Source: Trichosphaerium sp. ATCC 40318
Taxonomy: Eukaryota > Protista > Tubulinea
Reading direction: 5' to 3'
NCBI GenBank assembly: GCA_038496445.1
Contig: JALMLS010000634.1
Location: forward strand, 1 to 36,979
DNA: 36,979 nucleotides
The notes below the pieces were generated by a model. That model did no database searches, was not told the origin of the DNA, and saw nothing but the letters and a program-made list of their open reading frames with translations. Position 1 is the first letter of the stretch, and each line of letters starts with the position of its first letter. Positions 4,372-28,310 of the stretch are shown piece by piece. The translations under genes were made by a program, and so were the position numbers.

Positions 4372-5407
4372 CAGGGCTGAAACTCAGCTAGGCATTGCCT
4401 TAAAAAATGATGCATATTCCTAATTTTGGCATTGATGCATATTCCTAATTTTGGCATTAGATGGAAAAATCAAGGCATTTGCATTTGGCACTGTCCAATA
4501 AAATAAGGCATTTTTACAAAAAGGCAATGCCTTCATCAAAAAGACATTAATACCAGGCATTTTTGGGCATCTTTTGGCATTGCATAAAATCAGGCAATGC
4601 CTTGTATTGCATTTTTTGACATTGCATAAAATCAAGTAATGCCCTGTATTGCAAGTACTTTATGCCTTTATTATGCCTTATTTTTTTAAGCATTATATGC
4701 CTTGTATTTTAATTCATATATAAGACATTGCCTATACTATATCATAGGACTGATCACATTAAGGAAGTGGTTTAAGGTAAGTAACAGTCAAACAACTTTT
4801 ACACTTTTTTTTCACATCACCTACTGACGTTTTATATAGACAGGCACCTAGAGATATTAGTAATTCATGAAATTAGACGAAACCACCCCCAACCAAACCG
4901 CAGCACCCCATTTCATCTACAAAAGTAGTAGAAGCGAGCTCCACAATATTTCCAGGACCGTGGAATTCTAACACTACAAGGTAAGTTTTTTTTTTTTTTT
5001 TTCCCCCAACTCATATTTTCTTTAAGGTTTTTTCAAATGTGGACTTAGGAGTTTTGTGTATTGTATGTGTACTGTATTATAAAATAAATAGTTGTGTTAT
5101 TACCTGAAAATGCCCTGGTTTATTAGGCACTGTAGACTATGACAATGCTTTCTTTTTGCCTTCAAAATAAGGCATTGATGCATGAGTTATGCCCTAATTT
5201 GAAGGCATAATTCCTTAAAATATGCAGGCAAAACCATTCAATCTTGTGTACCAGATGCAAGCAGTTTTCATCAAATATAAGGCATTTTTGGAACAAAAAA
5301 TAAGGCACTGCCCTGTATTTGCCTTTTTGAATGAGGCAAAAACTAGGCATTTTTGTAAAAAATAAGGCATTATTTGAATGAAAATGCTTTGTTGAGTTTC
5401 AACCCTG
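4372..5407 (+). mobile_element. Family A copy A3 (complete)
   Basis: Termini cagggctgaaactca...tgagtttcaaccctg; colinear with A2. Confidence 0.9.
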
Positions 5408-7822: not shown

Positions 7823-8095
7823 TTACTTTATGACACTTTCAACTTCAGGAAAGTCAATTATCATGGCTTCCACTATGTAAGTGTTCTTTGGTGTAGAGCA
7901 CGCATAAGCCAAGTGTGACAACGTATTCAACGCAAAGAAATTCTTTATGAACTCATTTTGTGCTTTTTTAGAGCATGCTGCTCCATCTGCTCTATTGTGA
8001 GCACGTAGGGTGCTAAAAATTTCCATGTAAAAATAGCGTTGGCATTGCGGCGCTGTATACGGAGTTGAAGTTTGGCAACAGCATAATGTATTGCC
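7823..8095 (-). pseudogene. Degenerate fragment of a transposase paralogous to 9104-11720
   Basis: After correcting one frameshift it reads AIHYAVAKLQLRIQRRNANAIFTWKFLAP(L)RAHNRADGAACSKKAQNEFIKNFFALNTLSHLAYACSTPKNTYIVEAMIIDFP. This aligns with PIHAVVANIQQRLKTRDPGANIIWRFLAPLRAHNRADGSAASSKKLQNKYIRNFFVLSELSHLAYACRTLKNTYMLEAMVNDFP. Confidence 0.85.
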
Positions 8096-8289
8096 TGTTT
8101 CATTCAAATTTTGAGAGACAGACTGACTTTTGCTGCAAAAAAAATCCAGTTTCTGCCTGATCTGTCAGATCTGACGGATTTGACACTTCTGACAGATCTT
8201 GCAAATTGTCATTTTTTAAATGTGAGCTACCTGTACGTTGAGTTTTTGAAGCAAAACTAAAGCAAACAGTGTTTGAGGCAGCTTACTGT

Positions 8290-9103: not shown

Positions 9104-11720
9104 ATGCAACGCAATCCAAGTGAAAGGATTTGGTTTATTTGCGTGTGCTGCAATAAAAAAAAGCATAGGGAGTCAGGAGAAAACAGGTTAAACAAAATAG
9201 AAGGTGAATACTTCATTGGATACTCGCCATGCGTTTTAGCACGCGTAGAAAACGCTACGGGCAGCTTTGCTTGCAATACATGCCGAAAAAAAAATGCAAA
9301 TGAGCTAAAGGTATGGTAGACCGAAACCGCCTGCTTTTTTGAAGCTGCGTATACAAAGCTGTGGCTTAATTACACGTGTGTACAACTTTTCAAAGCAGGC
9401 CTTGGCGGTGGGGCCTCTGGTTTCAAGTTTTTCGCCAATCAACTAAAAAAAAGCGCCAAAATGTCATTCTTATTTAGCATTTAGTGTAACCCAGGTAGAC
9501 CTGTAGTACAATTTGAAGCTCTGCGGACACATCAGCAACGCAAAAGGTATTGACACTTTTTACATAAAAATCCAAACAACTAATTTTTTCGTAGAAAATT
9601 GGATGCTTTACACAAAGAAATAATAACTTATGTTGACCATCTACTTGCTCAAAGAGATCCAAAGTTGGTTAATGCATATAGAAAAAGGTATTCAGATCCA
9701 TCTCAATCACCAACAAAGGCACTGAGGAATAAAATTGTTGTCGACAGAGTAATACAACTGTATTTGAGTCTTTCAAAGAACTCACCAGTTCGTAAAAGTG
9801 CATTGCTCTCCTTCTTTGATGGCATTGATGATAGTACGTAATTGTGACTACCTTTTGGTGCTGATTATATCAGAGAATACAGCTAAGATGATCAGCCAAA
9901 CAACTCAAGCAGTAAACAAAGCCAGACAAAATATTAGAAGCTGTCCACCTCTTGATTACTTTCTACGAGACCTTGGGTTCAGAAGGGACAAACTAGGAAA
10001 TAAGGGGAATACAATTTAGGAATGGCTTGAGATGAATTGTGTTGTTCCATCGGGTAAGTACACGTTGAAATAGTCCACCAATTTTGGCTAAAATAAAAAT
10101 GTGTATTAACAAAACCATTTAGGTAGTACAAATCGGCGTTTTAGAGGCACAAAAGAAGCAATGTATCTAACATATTGTGCATGGGCAGAAGAACAAGGTC
10201 TTGACACAGTGAGCAGGCCAGTGTTTGAGCGTTTTGTAGATGCCGAACAAATTCAAGTCAGAGAGGGTGATAAATTTGAATCTAAGGAAGCTATTAAGCT
10301 TCAAGAAAAGGTAACAGAGTTGAATGAAAAGGTGACCAGTGGCATACCTGAGGAAAGTCTACAAAAGCTACGAAAAGAAATAGCCAACCTAAAAACAATA
10401 GATGAGTTTGCACGTGCTAGGATATATGAGTATGTAAAGGATCACCTTGATCTTGAAGCAAAACCTGATAGAGGTGTTATCACGCTAGATTTTACAGCTT
10501 CTCAAACTAACATGGAAACTAACTACATTATCCTTGTCTTGGTTTTAGCAACGAAGAACAAAATAGAATTGCCAGAAACATTGAAGAAGTATATGGTGTC
10601 ACCTACAAAACCACCATCAACATCAAATATAACTCTCGACAAACCTCAAAAAAAGAAAAGAAAAAGACGCACTAAGAAAGAGATGGAAAGAGATCAAGCA
10701 AAAAACCCTAAGAAACGACGAATGTCACACACACAAAAGCTTAAACAAGATGCTAAACCAACTCCACAATTGAAAAGTATTCCATCTATTAACTGCTCAA
10801 CATACAAACCTTGTGTTACATACTTACACTTCACTGTTAAAAAAGAACAAAAGAATAAAAAGGTAAAACAAACTGCTGACTATGTACAGTGGGTTCTAGA
10901 GCTTCTATACCAACATAAGTTCTTTGACCTGTTCAAAGAAATTATTTTATGGCACGTACCTTTTTTGTTGTTTCATTTTCTCTTTATTCAGCAACTGGCA
11001 AACATTTTAAAACATACCCTATACATGCTGTTGTTGCCAATATTCAACAGCGCTTAAAAACACGTGATCCAGGAGCCAATATTATATGGCGGTTTTTGGC
11101 ACCACTTCGTGCTCACAACAGAGCTGATGGTTCCGCAGCAAGCTCTAAAAAGCTACAAAATAAGTACATACGAAATTTCTTTGTACTGAGTGAACTGTCG
11201 CACCTTGCATATGCTTGTCGTACTCTCAAAAATACGTACATGTTAGAAGCCATGGTGAATGATTTTCCTGTTCTCGAACCAGCTGAACCTATTGGTGATA
11301 CATTTATGCGAAATGCATTTCAATTTAGCTACGGCATACCAGAAAATGGTTTTGATGACTGTGAACACACGTGCGTTAGCAAAAAACAAATGCGAGTACT
11401 AATTTTCTGTTAAATATAGTTGTGATCCTAAAGGCCCAAACAGAACATGTAACCACAATTGTGGGGGTTGTAGACGTGATCCTATCCGATTTTTGCCTGT
11501 GACGGTAGCCATGCGTTATGGTTCTGAGTTGGTGCTTGAGGACAAGAGGATACAACTCAGCTATAACGGTCCCAAACCAACAAAAAAAGATGGATGGAAT
11601 ACTAAGAGAGACAAACAAAGAAGAAATCCAAAACGTAGAATACGCTCTAGGGGAACTAGTTATATACACCTAGCACAAGATGAGCCAATTGAGGATGGAC
11701 AAAAGGAGTATATTCCGTAA
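9104..11720 (+). pseudogene. Intron-containing DDD-type transposase (Sola2/Zator-like by motif), apparently disrupted
   Basis: N-terminal CVCC...CNTC; MYLTY...VSRPVFERF; VITLDF; KEIILW...GKHFK; WRFLAPLRAHNRADG; basic NLS-like tract. In-frame TAG at 10017-10019, and no splice at ~10952-10991 restores the expected second Asp. Start position uncertain. Confidence 0.7.
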
Positions 11721-12416: not shown

Positions 12417-15400
12417 ATGACAGAACCACAAAGTGAGGAAAACAAATGTTTAACAGGTAAAAAAAAACAATACTCAAAACCATCTCTATTCAGTACAGGA
12501 ACCTTAGCAGTTAAACCAACCAACACTCTCTATCATTCAAGTGCTCGTGTAATTGAACTTGTGATTTTGTTTGCAGGTTTGTAAGACGTAGTAATCTAAT
12601 GGCTGATCAATTATAGCAACGAATGGCTATAAATACATTGTTTCAACATTAATTGATGTGAATGCCAATCTTGATGCTGTTGATTATGATGAATATACAG
12701 CATTGATGTATGCAGGTAAGTAATGTGACAATATTAAAATACAATATCTAAACTGACATTACTATTTTAGCAAAAAATGGACACGATTCAATTGTATCAA
12801 TGTTAATCAATGCCAAAGCCAATCTTGATGCTGTTAATTATGATGAATATACAGCATTGATGCATGCAGGTAAGTAATGTGACAATATTAAAATACAATA
12901 TCTAAACTGACATTACTATTTTAGCACAAAATGGACACGATTCAATTGTATCAATGTTAATCAGTGCCAAAGCCAATCTTGATGCTGTTAATTATGATGG
13001 ATATACAGCATTGATGTATGCAGGTAAGTAATGTGACAATATTAAAATACAATATCTAAACTGACATTACTATTTTAGCACAAAATGGACACGATTCAAT
13101 TGTATCAATGTTAATCAATGCCAAAGCCAATCTTGATGCTGTTAATGATGATGGAGGTACAGCATTGATGTATGCAGGTAAGTAATGTGACAATATTAAA
13201 ATACAATATCTAAACTGACATTACTATTTTAGCACAAAATGGACACAATTCAATTGTATCAATGTTAATCAATGCCAAAGCCAATCTTGATGCTGTTAAT
13301 TATGGTGGATATACAGCATTGATGTATGCAGGTAAGTAATGTGACAATATTAAAATACAATATCTAAACTGACATTACTATTTTAGCACAAAATGGACAC
13401 AATTCAATTGTATCAATGTTAATCAATGCCAAAGCCAATCTTGATGCTGTTGATAGTGATAGATATACAGCATTGATGTATGCAGGTAAGTAATGTGACA
13501 ATATTAAAATACAATATCTAAACTGACATTACTATTTTAGCACAAAATGGACACGATTCAATTGTATCAATGTTAATCAATGCCAAAGCCAATCTTGATG
13601 TTGTAAATACTCCTTTTAATTATGGTGGATATACAGCATTGATGTGTGCAGGTAAGTAATGTGACAATATTAAAATACAATATCTAAACTGACATTACTA
13701 TTTTAGCACAAAATGGACACGATTCAATTGTATCAATGTTAATCAATGCCAAAGCCAATCTTGATACTTTTAATAGTGGTGGATATACAGCATTGATATA
13801 TGCAGGTAAGTAATGTGACAATATTAAAATACAATATCTAAACTGACATTACTATTTTAGTACAAAATGGACACGATTCAATTGTATCAATGTTAATCAA
13901 TGCCAAAGCCAATCTTGATGCTGTTAGTGATGGATATACAGCATTGATGCATGCAGGTAAGTAATGTGACAATATTAAAATACAATATCTAAACTGACAT
14001 TACTATTTTAGCACAAAATGGACACAATTCAATTGTATCAATGTTAATCAATGCCAAAGCCAATCTTGATGCTGTTAATTATGGTGGATATACAGCATTG
14101 ATGTATGCAGGTAAGTAATGTGACAATATTAAAATACAATATCTAAACTGACATTACTATTTTAGCACAAAATGGACACGATTCAATTGTATCAATGTTA
14201 ATCAATGCCAAAGCCAATCTTGATGCTGTTAATACTGGTAAATATACAGCATTGATGTATGCAGGTAAGTAATGTGACAATATTAAAATACAATATCTAA
14301 ACTGACATTACTATTTTAGCACAAAATGGACACGATTCAATTGTATCAATGTTACTCAATGCCAAAGCCAATCTTGATACTGTTAATGGAGGTAGAAAAA
14401 ACCCTGATTCAGGTACCATTGCAATTTATCTTGTAGCACTATTTGTTGGAAGGAAAATTAATGTTGTTAGTTTTATCACCTGATAAAGAAAAGTGGCAAG
14501 ACAACCCTCTTGTGTTATTTAAAGGAGTGATATCAAATGCCCCTTTTTTTGTTGACTGGTTTATAACATTTTTAAAACGATGTCCAAGTGGCAAACAATG
14601 CCACACACTGTGGAAATCATGTTCATCATTTGCAACCAAAACACTGGAAGCACTTTCCTTTGAATTAATGGATAAAGATAAAATGATAAAGTGGTTTCGT
14701 TTCTTGGTATGCCTACATTATATAATATCCTTTGTTGATTATTAATATACAACCTTCAGCCAACACGTTCATATTTTAACCTGGCAATGGAAAAAGGTAC
14801 ATGTTATTTAATATGCTCTGTATTCGATCCCAAAGTTGTAATGTCTCCAGTACGATATCCACAAATCATAAATACACTTTTGTAACACTCTTTGTTTATC
14901 AGGACTTCTGGAAACAAAATGGACAATTAATGCAAGGTATCTTGTATGATATGCCTGATGATGCATGGAGCAATACAAATCAAAATGAGTACTTAAAAGA
15001 CACCACTGCAGGTAACAAGTCACTGTTTCTGTTACAAAAACTAAAAGGTATTACAAAAGGGGTGAAGGCTGAAAACGCATGGAACCTGAATCCGCGATTG
15101 TATTTTGCAAACAATTGGGACAGATCTAATAGCACGTGCGTTCAAAGAGTTGTCAACTGTTGGTTTTAGTTTATTTATTTTACAAAAAGAGGTGTTATTG
15201 TAAAGGCAACGCACTATAGAAGACTGAATCTTCTTGATAAAACTGACAAAGTGGCTGTCAGAGAGCTCAAGATCCTCAAACAGGAAATGTCGAAAATGCA
15301 TGGATGTGACAATTATGATATCATTGAAGCAACTCTTGTTTACAATCATATCTTGACAGAGAACTTTGGTCGATCCAACAAAATACTAAAACACAGGCAT

Positions 15401-16737
15401 CAGTAAGTATTATCAGCAGTGTTGCTGAATCTAAGTGAGTTTATTTTTAGAGAATTGAACATGTTGTTTAAAAAGCAAGATTGGAAAAAGGATACCTGCA
15501 AAGAGTACAAAGAGAGAATTTACAAAAAATACAATGCCATACCCACTCAAAATGATACAAATACCAATAACAAAGACATCTCAGAACAAGAGGTAATGTT
15601 CATCAAAAAAGTATGCACTTATATACTTGTTGTTTAGTTGCCAGTGATATTGATGGCCCACGGAACAACTGAAGAAGCGGCTTATAGTATTGTGAAGGCT
15701 GGTTTTACTCCGAGTGGTTTAGCTGCTGGCTACTATGGTCAAGGGATCTACTTCACAGTACGCACAAAACAACATGACATTCTATTCACTTTAGTTTTTC
15801 CACTGTAGCGGAGTATAAAGTATGCTTGTTCATACGATACTAAAGGACAAAAAGAAAAAACAGTTATTTTGAGTCTCGTCACTCCTGGCAACATATATCC
15901 TGTACACAAACAAGAATTTTATATCATATTAATTAATGACTACAAAAGGTAAGCCCAAACAACAAGCTAAGAGGAAAGCCAATAAAACCAGGCTATCAAA
16001 GTCATTACACATTGGTAGATCGTAAGGGTAAACCTGTCACTGAAGATAAAGTCGCCAATGCAGTATACGATGAGCTTGTTGTTGCACAAGGTAATTCTTT
16101 AAAGAAAGTGAAGTTTCGATCTAAATCTAAGCATCATGTTATCAGATACTCAAGCTGTTGCTCGATATGTCATCAAAGTTGCGCGAAAACAAGGAAAAAA
16201 GAAAACACGCAACACAAATAAACCCAATAAAGGAAATAAAAAGGCAGAGAAAGGAGAAAATAAACAAACTGAAAAAGATCACGTTTCAGATGATCTCTCC
16301 GATTCTGAGAATGATATTCTTATTAGTAACCGGTAAGACATCACAATTTAGGTTTCCTGAATAGCTTATATTGTTGTACTAGAAAATTGTGGGCTTCTCA
16401 TGTGGACTCAACTGACGACCAACTGTCAACTAACAACAACGTCAATGATGTCAGTCTTGAAATAGAATTAAGAGAGGCCAACCATGAGGTTGACAAACTA
16501 AAGAAGAGCAATGCGAATACGCAGGAAGTTAATGAGAATTTACGGCAAACGTTTGATAAGCATCAACAATGCATAGCCAACTTGAAGCAAGACGAAGGCA
16601 AGTTAATAGAACGTGCTAATCACCTACAAAATGCCCATTCGACCCAACAACAACGAATTGCCACGTTAACAGAAATCGTCACTAGCCTACAAGAGATCAA
16701 CGCCAAACTAGCTCAACTTGAAAGTACAACGAAGTAG
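12417..16737 (+). CDS. Multi-exon ankyrin-repeat / PARP-like ADP-ribosyltransferase / coiled-coil protein
   Basis: ATG 12417 (MTEPQSEENKCLT). 12 ankyrin exons (AQNGHDSIVSMLINAKANLDAVNxxGYTALMYA). ART motifs HGT (15659), GYYGQGIYFT, SIKYA, VILSLVTPGN, GYQSHY and YDELVV (16069-16074). Coiled coil to TAG 16737, AATAAA ~16770. The splice junction at ~14390-14453 is ambiguous. Confidence 0.88.
12617..14412 (+). repeat. Tandem 154-bp exon+intron array (99-nt ankyrin exon plus identical 55-nt intron)
   Basis: Intron gtaagtaatgtgacaatattaaaatacaatatctaaactgacattactattttag starts at 12716, 12870, 13024, 13178, 13332, 13486, 13652, 13806, 13957, 14111 and 14265. Full exons are 99 nt except 13541-13651 (111) and 13861-13956 (96). 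Confidence 0.97.
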
Positions 16738-21870: not shown

Positions 21871-24184
21871 ATGAATAAAAAAAACTACCTGCAACTCTGC
21901 TTCAACACGGCGTTTTCAGCGCCATGCTTCACAAAAAACAGCGTCACTCCTATCAACGAAGATTCATTGCGTTACCAATCAATACATGCGTGGTAGACAA
22001 CCACAGTCTTAACTGTTTACTGAACATTAAAAACCCGACTGTACCGATTGTCTGGCAAGGTAACAAATACATTATTTTATTCTGGTTTGCTACTTTACAC
22101 TATGGGTTGAAGCGTTTCCCTTAGAAAGTACCAGTACGAAGTCATTGCTAAACTCTGTATTAAAGAAATAGCCAAAGAAGTTGCTGTTATAAACATGGGT
22201 GGCAGTCGTCATCCTCACTGACGCAATTTGTTACCCTTATAGGAGCGTTGGTATAAACACTTCACATTGAAATGACGAGTATAATCACAGTGAAAGTCTT
22301 GAGTTTTGTTAAAGTAAAGGCTTGCTGACCCTCCTAATTGTTTTTTCTTTTCGAACCGCTGTGCGCGTGAGTGTAACTCCATAGCTAAGGTAGCTAAGAT
22401 TTCAGTAGTACAGCGTTAATTGTGAAGCTAGCAAGTGATTTGACGAGATGTCGTGATAGAGCGAAACAAGTTCCAACACCGGTTTCTCAAAATACAGTTG
22501 TGAAAACAAAGAAAAACCCTTTGGATGGCAAAACCTATTTTCTTTGTAGTTTGCAGTAATGTAGAACGTGCGGACTATTTTTTAACCCGACAGGCAACAA
22601 TGTGTTATTATAAAAACATTATCATAACGAGAACCACGAATTCGTCGACCTGTTTTTACGCTAGGCAGACGCTGTAATCACTTGGGGTTTTTTTGTGCGA
22701 TCACATGTTTGAGATAGATTTTTTTTCGTGTTTTGTTAGTTTCTATCTTCCCCTTGTTTCATTTGTGACACTTTATATTGTCAGGGTAGGCGATGGCTAT
22801 TTAAATTACTGTATTTTGAGCTGAACAGAACCAACAACACTGCGGGCATGAAACCGGCACCAACGAACTCCTTACGCGCCATAATACGCTATCTACTCTC
22901 TAAAGAACATGTACTACAACAATTTTTTCTGCTATTTTGTGTATCTATGACGTAGAAGATTAACATAGTGCCAACAGGCGTTATGTCGAAAAAAATTGAG
23001 TCTGCGGTTTTAAAGTGCTTTTTCCCTACGTCTCATAGCCGTCACGCTTCGTTCCGTTTTTTTTTTTGTTGAGGCTTTGGTATTACTCTTGTTTCTTTAT
23101 AATTGCGCAAGCTGACATCCAGTCGTTTCATTGCCCAACCACAGCAGATAGCCAATATATTGCATTACTAGTATTGAGCGCTAACACCACTACATAAGTA
23201 TTTTTGCAACAACTTTTTTTTTTTGTGTGTTTGATCTTCGTAGCAACCATGAACGCTTCCAACCATTTGTTGTCTAAACCTAAATGATGTAGTATCCACT
23301 GGTGATGACATGTTCACATAGCAATCCGTGTCATTCAGGTTTGAATAGTTGTGATCTAGATGAGATGCCCTCCGTGTACTGCTTCGCCTTGGTTATTTGG
23401 TTCTTCGCCAACATAGTTAACATTTAATCCAAGTGAAAGTCTTGAGTAACCAGTGCTTACACTAATGGTAAAAGAAACTATTTTGTTCTGTTTTCTTCCT
23501 TGTGTTGCTTGGGCACATATAATATGAGGCTCCTTGTAATACGGTAACATTATGCTTACAAGTCAAAAATTTTTGTTCAATCTGCTGTTTTTTTTTTCCT
23601 CAAATGTTTTCGAATTCAATGAAAACCAAGCATCGAAAATATTTTTATTACAGTTTTATACGCACATATACATGTCGCATTAGTGTGCAAAGAATCAGGT
23701 CAAAAATCGATTTTTCGAGACAGCTGTGAGGACTTCTTTCTGGTTTTTTTGAGCCAAAAACGAGGAATGTTTATAAATCTTTTTCTCGTTGAAAATACAA
23801 AACATGTGCATTGACATGTAGATCTGTTGTGGAAAAAATCAGAACTGAACTTGACCGTGTTTGCCATAAAATTTACCTTTCTTATTTTTTTCTGTATTTT
23901 CGCTGTGAAAATTGTTGTGTCATTGGCAGCATGTTATGGATTTATTTGAGCACACTGACCATTCAAAGATACCGACGGTAATAATAGTATTTACATGCTG
24001 ATATCCCAGCCTTTTAGTCGTTATGGTGGCCATTGCAGGTTCATCGCTGCAGTAATTTATGCAGTTACAATATGTTCCTTTTAAGTTTGTTCATGTTTGC
24101 ATAGCTCTTCTCTAGTTTTATCAACCTTATTATTTGCTTCTTGTAACTCTAGTTCAAAACCATCTTACATTAAAACTCTTGTCC

Positions 24185-24425
24185 AGTCACCAGTGATGTA
24201 TATTGTCCATGAAATCAGCTTACAGTATTGTAAGGGTGGTTTTGGAATTTCAAAGTTTGTTGGATGCTGGTTACTTTGGTAAGGGATATACTTCACAGTA
24301 TGTTACAAAAGTACTATGTGTGCTCTCATACCTACTTCTTACACTTAAAATTATAAACCATGATTGTTCACATGATATTTAGGAAAGAATGAAAAAACAC
24401 TCATCTTGAGTCTTGTCACTATAGA
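24185..24425 (+). pseudogene. Decayed PARP-like ART fragment paralogous to the 15638-15900 exons
   Basis: Frameshifted PVMYIVH...SAYSI.KGGFG...LDAGYFGKG(I)YFT|gt with the same donor position as the intact gene, followed by EKTLILSLVT. Confidence 0.75.
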
Positions 24426-26599: not shown

Positions 26600-28310
26600 G
26601 CTTTGCCAACAGCTCTACCCTACGATAAAACAGCAGCCCTCATGGTCAAGCGCGAGCGGAGAATGCTATGTCAACGTAACGTACCAGGGTTGCCTATGGT
26701 CGATAATAGGGCTGAAGAACTATCAGATCACAAATGGGTTATGAAGGGAATGGCGGAGACGGTAGCGAACATGCTGGGTCTGGAGAAGGCTAAAGCGCAA
26801 GCAGCTACTAGGATTATCAATATGGCATATATCACATTACTGCACTGTAAATATAAAGTACGGCGTACCACAGAAGCGAAGTTCAGAAACGAGATGTAGA
26901 ACTACTGGAAGAAACAGATGGAAATCCACCAGGAAAAAAAAAGGATTGTAATGCGTAAGGGGAATAGAAATGAGGGAAGATGGAGTGTCACAAATGTGCT
27001 TGGAATGGAGATTGTGGACAGGTTTTTACGCCAAGGGGGCTTTTCCAGCAAGGGAAGGTTTTACTATTTTTCCTCCAACTTTTCTTTTGGCTACTTTATT
27101 GTAAAGGTGGTATAGCCATGTCGGTATCTCCAAGTGGCCTTATCTGCGCCCTGATAAGTCAACCCCAGACACTAAACAATAAACGTACCAAATATACTCT
27201 AGAATGCAAACTGACACATTGGAGAGCTTTGCCATCAAGGGAAAAATCATGTCACCATCACAATTTGGCTTTATTAAAGGCAAATCAATTCACATGGCAC
27301 AGAAGCAATTCTTTTCGATTATCCGAGACGCTAAAAACACAGGCAACAACTTTTATGCTCTTTATATAGACCTTAGGAAAGCGTATGATTCGATAACTTA
27401 CTGGGCAATCAACAAAAGACTTGTATGGCATAGATATAGCAAGTACAAGGAAAGCAACCATGTCAATGTATCACAAGTTAACTACTACCCCTTGTAGGAA
27501 ATGTATTTCAAATGGTTCTCTGGAAAGGGGAACAAGACAAGGAGATATCATTTCTAATATTATATGTGACCTCTTTATTAACCCTTCTTCACCAGCTCAA
27601 CTCACTGAACGTTGGGTACATGGATTCGCATGGCGACATAACATCAGTCATTGCATACATAGACGACTACTAGCCAATAACCTTGAAAACATTCAAAAAC
27701 TTTATGATACACTAACCAATTGTTGCAACTTCTATAACTCAAGGTAACACGGAAAAATCCACAATTACACCGAAGAGAATAATATATCTATCAGACGCAA
27801 TCCACTCTTTTGGAAAGATACGCTCATCCCTATTTTAAAGCCTCAGAATCATACAAATACCAGGGAATACTAACCAACATAATATTTTACATAACAGTTC
27901 AAAAAGCTTAGCTTGTCTTTTATGTCTACGGTCTCTTTAGTTAACACTAATTACTTTACCACTGGTCAAAAAATACAGCTCATAAACCAGGTAGCAATCT
28001 TGTATTAGATTCACACAAAATACTATTCATATTGAGGAGAAAGATCTTAAATAATGGATGACCGAGAAAAGATTATTAAAAGGAAAAGTGAAAATGCAAG
28101 TCAACGCCTACAACCAACGAGTACAATCCTCTACCTTGGATACGGTATCTCTTCTGGATACTCAGATCGCTGCCTACCTCAAAACAACACTAAAAGATAA
28201 CCTTAGCTGTCTCGAGGCTACCATTTCCAACGAAACATTACTCTATGATATCGATAAGATCTCTTCTCTCCCTAAAGAAAAAGAGACCAAGACTTGTTAA
28301 AACTAAATCT
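26600..28310 (+). mobile_element. Degenerate non-LTR retrotransposon, reverse transcriptase region
   Basis: QFGFIKGKS, ALYIDLRKAYDSI, RGTRQGDIIS...LF, AYIDD (27653-27667) and YKYQG across several frameshifts. Confidence 0.88.

Follow-up and report, generated by a model that had tools for sequence, protein, structure and literature searches.

A repeat array that is homogenised except for a hypervariable binding face is an established mark of recognition proteins under fast evolution; it has so far been linked chiefly to fungal NLRs and, less closely, to the receptors of brown algae. In fungal NLRs, ANK, TPR and WD domains show high internal conservation (HiC) together with positive selection and a repeat number that is polymorphic (Dyrka et al., 2014; PMC4986451), a pattern that has been read as concerted evolution joined to diversifying selection for rapid change of binding specificity (PMC4986451). 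In the brown alga Ectocarpus, the LRRs of ROCO genes and the TPRs of NB-ARC genes are encoded one repeat per exon, and a hypothesis of somatic shuffling has been raised (Zambounis et al., 2012; PMC3341825). Spider silk genes are known to contain iterated introns with 94-99.7% identity inside one gene, which are proposed to promote unequal crossing-over and homogenisation (PMC9779670), and new repeat copies generally undergo accelerated divergence, partly from positive selection (Persi et al.; PMC5120217). Here we describe an ankyrin-repeat array in a gene of the amoeba Trichosphaerium sp. ATCC 40318 (GenBank assembly GCA_038496445.1, contig JALMLS010000634.1). The window analysed is the whole stretch of 36,979 nt, AT-rich eukaryotic DNA with 33-40% G+C. 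What is new at this locus is the combination of the homogenised-repeat regime with an intron per repeat, a PARP-type enzyme in place of the NOD module and an amoeba host.

The array is built of exon-plus-intron units. An exact-string search found 11 copies of a 55-nt intron (GTAAGT...TATTTTAG) on the plus strand, with zero differences among them and no further copy anywhere in the window. The ten internal exons that alternate with these introns measure 99 nt in eight cases, 111 nt in one and 96 nt in one; all are phase 1-1 and hold one ankyrin repeat each, which makes them frame-neutral units, and splicing joins them into a single open frame of ankyrin repeats. The 99-nt exons share 94% mean pairwise nucleotide identity, and those at 13233-13331 and 14012-14110 are identical in sequence. 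Tandem Repeats Finder gave 94% matches and a score of 3060 for the tract. By similarity, the array exons are ankyrin repeats: phmmer of a single repeat against the PDB returned designed ankyrin proteins (E=1.6e-8; best match 4GPM), and a single 32-residue exon matched Pfam Ank_4/Ank at E=7e-4, under the gathering score because the query is one repeat only. The array and its edges comprise:

12716-14319, plus strand: the 55-nt phase-1 introns, eleven identical copies, and between them the ten internal ankyrin exons (exact matches, codon tables)
12716, 12870, 13024, 13178, 13332, 13486, 13652, 13806, 13957, 14111, 14265, plus strand: starts of the array introns (exact matches)
12771-12869, 12925-13023, 13079-13177, 13233-13331, 13387-13485, plus strand: internal exons, first to fifth (codon tables)
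13541-13651, 13707-13805, 13861-13956, 14012-14110, 14166-14264, plus strand: internal exons, sixth to tenth (codon tables)
12664-14387, plus strand: homogenised tandem array, 11.1 copies of a 154-nt unit made up of a 99-nt exon and a 55-nt intron (Tandem Repeats Finder)
12617-12715, plus strand: exon 2, diverged N-terminal capping repeat (exon alignment)
14320-14412, plus strand: exon 13, last helix-2 segment and diverged C-terminal cap (…NAKANLDTVNGGRKNPDS) (exon alignment, gene model)

The homogenised tract ends inside exons 2 and 13, whose outer halves are diverged; exon 2 is part of the array in its 3' half, from about 12664 on, but not in its 5' half. Edges of this kind are what unequal crossing-over yields. 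The perfectly invariant block consists of the intron and 5 nt, the next ~60 exon nt vary by singletons only, and ~120 nt of near-perfect identity flanks every variable patch. The exon framework varies hardly more than the introns do, so the homologous substrate extends over all of the 154-nt unit save for a patch of ~35 nt, and the introns are not special in this respect. The gene has 11 further introns, and these are unrelated to the array intron and to one another, so intron identity belongs to the array and does not reflect a constraint on splicing in general. Spider silk genes (flagelliform; Argiope MaSp2, with introns 97.6% identical on average, PMC9779670) likewise consist of tandem exon-intron units, and by the spidroin criterion the present gene shows 11 of 11 array introns identical beside 11 unrelated ones. 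Silk exons, however, are structural, low-complexity and homogenised, and carry neither a hypervariable binding patch nor an enzyme domain.

The ends of the array intron can pair over 8 bp (AGUAAUGU/ACAUUACU; 12719-12763 in the first copy), no better than shuffled sequences do (z about -1). Such pairing would bring the donor and branch regions close together. A structured or functional intron was rejected as a candidate, with the stem inside the shuffle range and nothing similar in the other introns of the gene, and a box C/D-like reading was dropped, the Rfam matches being exonic and at chance level.

The distribution of change across the unit is the central observation. The ten internal exons differ by 22 minimal substitutions, 21 nonsynonymous and one synonymous, against none in the eleven introns; the exons also carry two in-frame indels (+12, -3), and nine distinct sequences are present among them, singletons included. 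Were mutation uniform over the unit, the probability that all 22 substitutions fall in exons would be 6e-5, and nonsynonymous sites have changed more often than intron and synonymous sites taken together (Fisher p=2.7e-6). The changes are also clustered, with 15 of the 22 lying within 21 of the 99 exon nt, the seven codons of the beta-hairpin (p=2.9e-6). A Goldman-Yang codon model in IQ-TREE estimates omega at about 7.3, with kappa at 6.3, and the log-likelihood drops by 3.6 units when omega is constrained to 1 and kappa is profiled (likelihood-ratio test statistic 7.14, p=0.0075). These results support diversifying selection on the array with moderate statistical strength. The mutation spectrum is an ordinary mix, in which transitions make up 15 of the 22 changes and all four bases are affected, and it therefore gives no indication of a process like that of diversity-generating retroelements (DGRs); DGR-like adenine-specific mutagenesis was rejected on these grounds.

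Judged by alignment to designed ankyrins of solved structure, the variable residues coincide with the predicted ankyrin binding face. The register was taken from single-exon alignments to NI3C (2QYJ/2XEH) and OR264 (4GPM), at E=1e-7 to 1e-8, and the surface mapping is this alignment to the solved structures; it places the N/D/S residue at position 1 of the D-x-x-G-x-T-P-L hairpin. Fourteen of the 33 positions vary (1-5, 9, 10, 12, 13, 17, 24, 25, 32 and 33), and positions 32-5 hold 63% of the positional entropy. The designed ANK-N5C library was randomised at positions 2, 3, 5, 10, 13 and 33, which form a continuous binding surface of beta-turn 1 and helix 1 on a constant framework (PMC4308713). 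All six of these positions vary in the array, which has a constant framework of the same kind. Classical DARPins were reportedly randomised at positions 2, 3, 5, 13, 14 and 33 (Binz et al. 2003), five of which are variable here (hypergeometric p=0.037). Position 14 is invariant in the window array, and positions 1, 4 and 32 vary in addition; moreover, DARPins are a man-made library of separate molecules, whereas the variants here are successive repeats of one protein. Hairpin residues are Y, G, D, N or S in 91% of cases, a composition that may resemble that of paratopes.

Much of this had been anticipated by a first-pass annotation made from the letters of the window. It had described eleven identical introns separating exons that differ, one ankyrin repeat per exon, and differences that nearly all change an amino acid, and each of these descriptions is borne out by the counts above. 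The loop peptides it listed are all present as quoted, as are the MY/MH/MC/IY and K/Q variants and the two in-frame indels, and the limits it drew, 12617-14412, are the exact outer limits of exons 2 to 13. Its proposals that variation is focused on the binding face and that the array is under diversifying selection likewise agree with the position counts and the codon-model result. Its entry on the array made no mention of the PARP-type enzyme whose arm the array forms.

The closest parallel to this pattern is found in the fungal HiC repeats (PMC4986451; Podospora het-d/het-e, PMC12222747), which are also near-identical tandem ankyrin repeats whose variation and positive selection are confined to the beta-hairpin/loop and inner-helix face. 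They have been modelled on PDB 4GPM (PMC4986451), the same structure that is the best PDB match of the window repeat. The HiC criterion asks for at least 85% identity over at least 100 residues; the 11 repeats here show 84.9% mean pairwise protein identity over 363 residues, which places them at the threshold. Fungal arrays, however, have no intron per repeat and lie C-terminal to NACHT/NB-ARC, whereas the window array has an exon and an intron per repeat, lies N-terminal and is partnered by a PARP-type transferase. No Pfam match to a NACHT, NB-ARC or NOD domain was found in the window segments or in the paralogs described below. Repeat-number polymorphism is a feature of Podospora, whereas the window array is known from one assembly. 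The Ectocarpus receptors (PMC3341825; PMC11378527) share with this gene one repeat per frame-neutral exon and positive selection on predicted ligand contacts, but they are LRR or TPR proteins rather than ankyrin proteins, carry ROCO or NB-ARC rather than PARP, and belong to a brown alga rather than an amoeba. The 100% identical introns and homogenised exon framework also set the window array apart from them.

The array is only the N-terminal arm of a larger protein, which continues through a linker and a PARP-type H-Y-E domain to a coiled coil. Our gene model, built from the genomic sequence with downstream support from a paralog (P0004), runs on the plus strand from an ATG at 12417 to a TAG ending at 16737 and comprises 23 exons and 22 GT-AG introns, giving an intact open reading frame (ORF) of 1008 residues. 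Intron 1 is 160 nt long and the others 45-68 nt. No signal-peptide-like start is visible in the sequence of exon 1. At the junction of array and linker, NPDS/VLSPDKEKW parallels NTIS/VISPDKKMW of a paralogous transcript (L001), in which an intron is retained at the equivalent position. The parts of the gene outside the array are:

12417-12456, plus strand: exon 1, ATG plus 13 codons (MTEPQSEENKCLT), ending in phase 1 (in-frame join to exon 2)
12457-12616, plus strand: intron 1, 160 nt, GT-AG, with a sequence not related to that of the array intron (gene model)
14413-14470, plus strand: intron 13, 58 nt, at the junction of ankyrin array and linker (paralog junction)
14471-15592, plus strand: linker and pre-catalytic region (tblastn with paralog P0004, gene model)
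14471-14706, 14760-14834, 14903-15135, 15190-15402, 15451-15592, plus strand: exons of the linker region (gene model)
15638-16090, plus strand: PARP-type ADP-ribosyltransferase core, predicted, in exons 15638-15757, 15809-15901 and 15949-16090 (Pfam, family alignment, paralog model)
16146-16332, plus strand: end of the catalytic domain, then a Lys-rich and an acidic low-complexity segment (tblastn, gene model)
16383-16737, plus strand: coiled-coil-like C-terminal tail and TAG stop at 16735-16737 (aligns to the P0004 C-terminus)

The linker and pre-catalytic region, ~300 residues, has no significant Pfam family, and the C-terminal tail gives only weak matches to coiled-coil families in Pfam. 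Within the linker, an in-frame 36-nt GT…AG segment on the plus strand (15012-15047) was kept in the model, and P0004 has no corresponding residues; it may be a very short intron, or else an insertion of 12 residues.

Several lines of comparison support the prediction that the catalytic core is a PARP-type ADP-ribosyltransferase. The predicted catalytic triad consists of the H in MAHGT (15659-15661), the Y in GQGIYFT (15749-15751) and the E in YDELVV (16072-16074), and all three lie in conserved motifs (HGT, GQGIYFT and DELVV) and align with conserved columns of the family alignment. In the window protein the domain is split over three exons, the best of which scores 18.8 bits with PF00644, below the cut-off of 26.7; three paralogs, P0004, P0007 and P0012, lie above the gathering score, at 30.9, 36.5 and 52.7 bits. 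An AlphaFold model of residues 150-410 of P0004, which stands in here for the window protein, has a mean pLDDT (predicted local distance difference test) of 63 and matches PARP12, tankyrase 1/2 and PARP13/14/15 at E about 1e-7 with a target TM (template-modelling) score of 0.6-0.7. Phmmer of P0004 against all PDB sequences gave no match at E<=0.01.

P0004 is a 590-residue protein encoded on JGI contig L001, and tblastn with it covers every exon downstream of the array. The gene model is 57% identical to P0004 and 54% identical to P0007. L001 is a spliced transcript with seven and a half contiguous ankyrin repeats upstream of P0004, matching Ank_2 at E=3.6e-38. Its retained intron between ankyrin array and linker (705-783) contains a run of N, and because of this the public gene caller split the ankyrin-PARP protein into two ORFs. 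The L001 repeats share ~64% nucleotide identity, a value partly lowered by a mis-registered 32-residue repeat, against 94% in the window; since they are far more diverged, homogenisation appears to be a state of particular family members. The PARP subtype (…GYYGQGIYFT…PGYQSHY…ELVV) also occurs in other eukaryote-like transcripts, namely P0012 (L003, L004), P0008 (L005) and P0011, where it sits behind non-homogenised ankyrin repeats or other N-terminal regions. P0008 has two PARP copies in one protein, and in several distant members of the subtype Q replaces the catalytic H. With a linker exon of 78 residues as query, a representative search recovered one true relative, P0004, the five other matches being repetitive and spurious. 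A 42-nt exon framework pattern had no match in metagenome_contigs, and a protein-pattern scan of public contigs based on the P0004/P0007 alignment, for which the patterns were poor, confirmed no locus.

In overall plan, the protein resembles tankyrase (PARP5a/b), in which an N-terminal ankyrin arm brings partners to an H-Y-E PARP domain at the C-terminus, with an oligomerisation module in addition, and whose catalytic domains are among the best structural matches of the P0004 model. Tankyrase has a SAM domain between ankyrin and PARP, whereas no SAM match was found with Pfam in the window segments or in P0004, and a ~300-residue linker and a coiled coil replace it in the window gene. The tankyrase ankyrin clusters are conserved, neither homogenised nor hypervariable. 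Membership in the tankyrases was rejected, both for the SAM domain and for the sequence kinship indicated by the P0004 search of the PDB.

Based on these data, we propose that the array is probably the fast-evolving recognition arm of an ankyrin-PARP enzyme, formed by tandem amplification, homogenisation and positive selection on the binding face. A 154-nt unit of one ankyrin exon and one short phase-1 intron would have been amplified in tandem, and unequal crossing-over or gene conversion between copies would keep the units nearly uniform. Positive selection would fix amino-acid changes almost only on the concave face, at the beta-hairpin tip and the inner helix, and the introns would have remained identical as neutral passengers of recent or ongoing homogenisation, with no role of their own. 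The array would then act as the target-recognition arm of an intracellular enzyme. We suggest that this arm may select the substrate or the trigger of ADP-ribosylation and that the coiled coil may oligomerise the protein. The fast evolution may stem from a conflict in which the partners, for example viruses or bacteria, keep changing, and an immune role for the gene is conceivable. An amoeba array on a PARP scaffold suggests independent origins of this evolutionary solution on different effector scaffolds, and points to ADP-ribosylation as one way in which protists may act on recognition.

A number of points weigh against this proposal. The lone synonymous change anchors the synonymous rate, so the error on omega is wide, and the codon-model test is tree-based and takes no account of exchange between repeats. 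Inside the hairpin alone, the split between synonymous and nonsynonymous changes is only marginal. The overlap with the classical DARPin positions is modest, as its p value indicates, and since the variable sites 17, 24 and 25 lie on helix 2, off the binding face, the differences are not all on that face. The sequence of the array and the order of its repeats come from a single assembly; the array is compact, at 1.7 kb, and can be spanned by a single long read. Finally, a mutational or templated-conversion hotspot local to the hairpin may be at work.

In that case, loop diversity would be made by the hotspot itself, or by short templated conversion from paralogous ankyrin arrays, and not by selection on point mutations, an account that we hold to be unlikely. 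It would explain the tight multi-nucleotide clusters of change in the exons at 13387 and 14166, where about 10 nt hold 4-5 differences, as well as the 12-nt insertion in the exon at 13541, and it draws further support from the marginal shortage of synonymous change in the hairpin. The four-gamete test also speaks for it, since all four combinations occur at five pairs of informative sites, even between adjacent codons; these violations fit exchange between repeats, but fit recurrent change to a small set of residues equally well. Third codon positions of the hairpin, however, account for only 1 of its 15 events, and a blind hotspot would not spare them. The excess of nonsynonymous over neutral change is also seen outside the hairpin, at positions 9, 10, 12, 13, 17 and 25, and templated conversion is left without a donor sequence to demonstrate templating.

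A broader version of exchange would make the ankyrin-array PARP genes a germline or even somatic repertoire, with loop cassettes passed between units and between paralogous arrays through the long identical spacers of framework plus intron, which we consider unlikely. If true, these genes would be a family of intracellular receptors distinct from NLRs, in which recognition is answered by ADP-ribosylation.

A programmed generator of diversity, in which somatic recombination of units or combinatorial skipping of frame-neutral exons produces many receptor versions, appears very unlikely to us. Because the internal exons are all phase 1-1, skipping or reordering them would preserve the reading frame, the near-perfect identity of ~120 nt around each variable patch would suit recombination of units, and shuffling has been proposed for Ectocarpus (PMC3341825). 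Yet tandem duplication passively gives an identical anatomy, no isoform or rearranged copy is in evidence, and neither a recombination signal nor a dedicated enzyme is visible within the window. The first-pass annotation had interpreted the locus as a cassette system with the identical introns as its recombination substrate. Its exon-per-repeat layout, binding-face focus and selection signal stand, but the homologous substrate is the whole 154-nt unit rather than the introns in particular, and nothing shows programmed, somatic or splicing-based shuffling, given that the four-gamete violations can be read as recurrent mutation just as well.

Positive selection could be dispensed with altogether if the array were a very recent neutral amplification under relaxed constraint, with loops that simply tolerate change. 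Strongly relaxed selection is common in new repeat copies (PMC5120217), and the counts here are small. Relaxation cannot, however, lift the nonsynonymous rate above that of intron and synonymous sites, as is observed (21 changes versus 1, p=2.7e-6), and omega of 7.3 (p=0.0075) also speaks against it, so that we regard it as highly improbable. An assembly or polishing artefact that made the introns identical, or collapsed or reordered the repeats, is extremely unlikely: a 1.7-kb array of 154-nt units is hard for short reads, but the spliced ORF is perfect and nine different exon sequences remain, singletons and the two indels among them, whereas polishing that erased intron variants should have erased single-copy exon variants too.

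Elsewhere in the window, a degenerate PARP-like fragment with stops and frame changes lies on the plus strand at 24175-24420 (…KSAYSIVR…LLDAGYFGKGIYFT…EKTLILSLVT) and is probably the remnant of a second family member, about 8 kb downstream. An ORF fragment at 27204-27494 (plus strand) matches the RVT_1 reverse transcriptase at E=1.2e-5, under the gathering score, and a decayed retroelement is suggested by the ORFs that overlap one another around 26980-27747. Two ORFs in opposite orientation, at 7823-8107 (minus strand) and 10949-11413 (plus strand), share a ~60-residue motif (RAHNRADG…SHLAYAC…KNTY…DFP) with no Pfam match; it looks like a dispersed repeat or transposon-borne sequence, and an adjoining ORF of 298 residues at 10161-11057 is also an orphan. 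Two-copy tandem repeats of 42-43 nt at 943-1024, 1313-1395 and 4567-4653 have a common core, GCATTGCATAAAATCAAGTAATGCCCTGTATT, and look like a dispersed family of small repeats.

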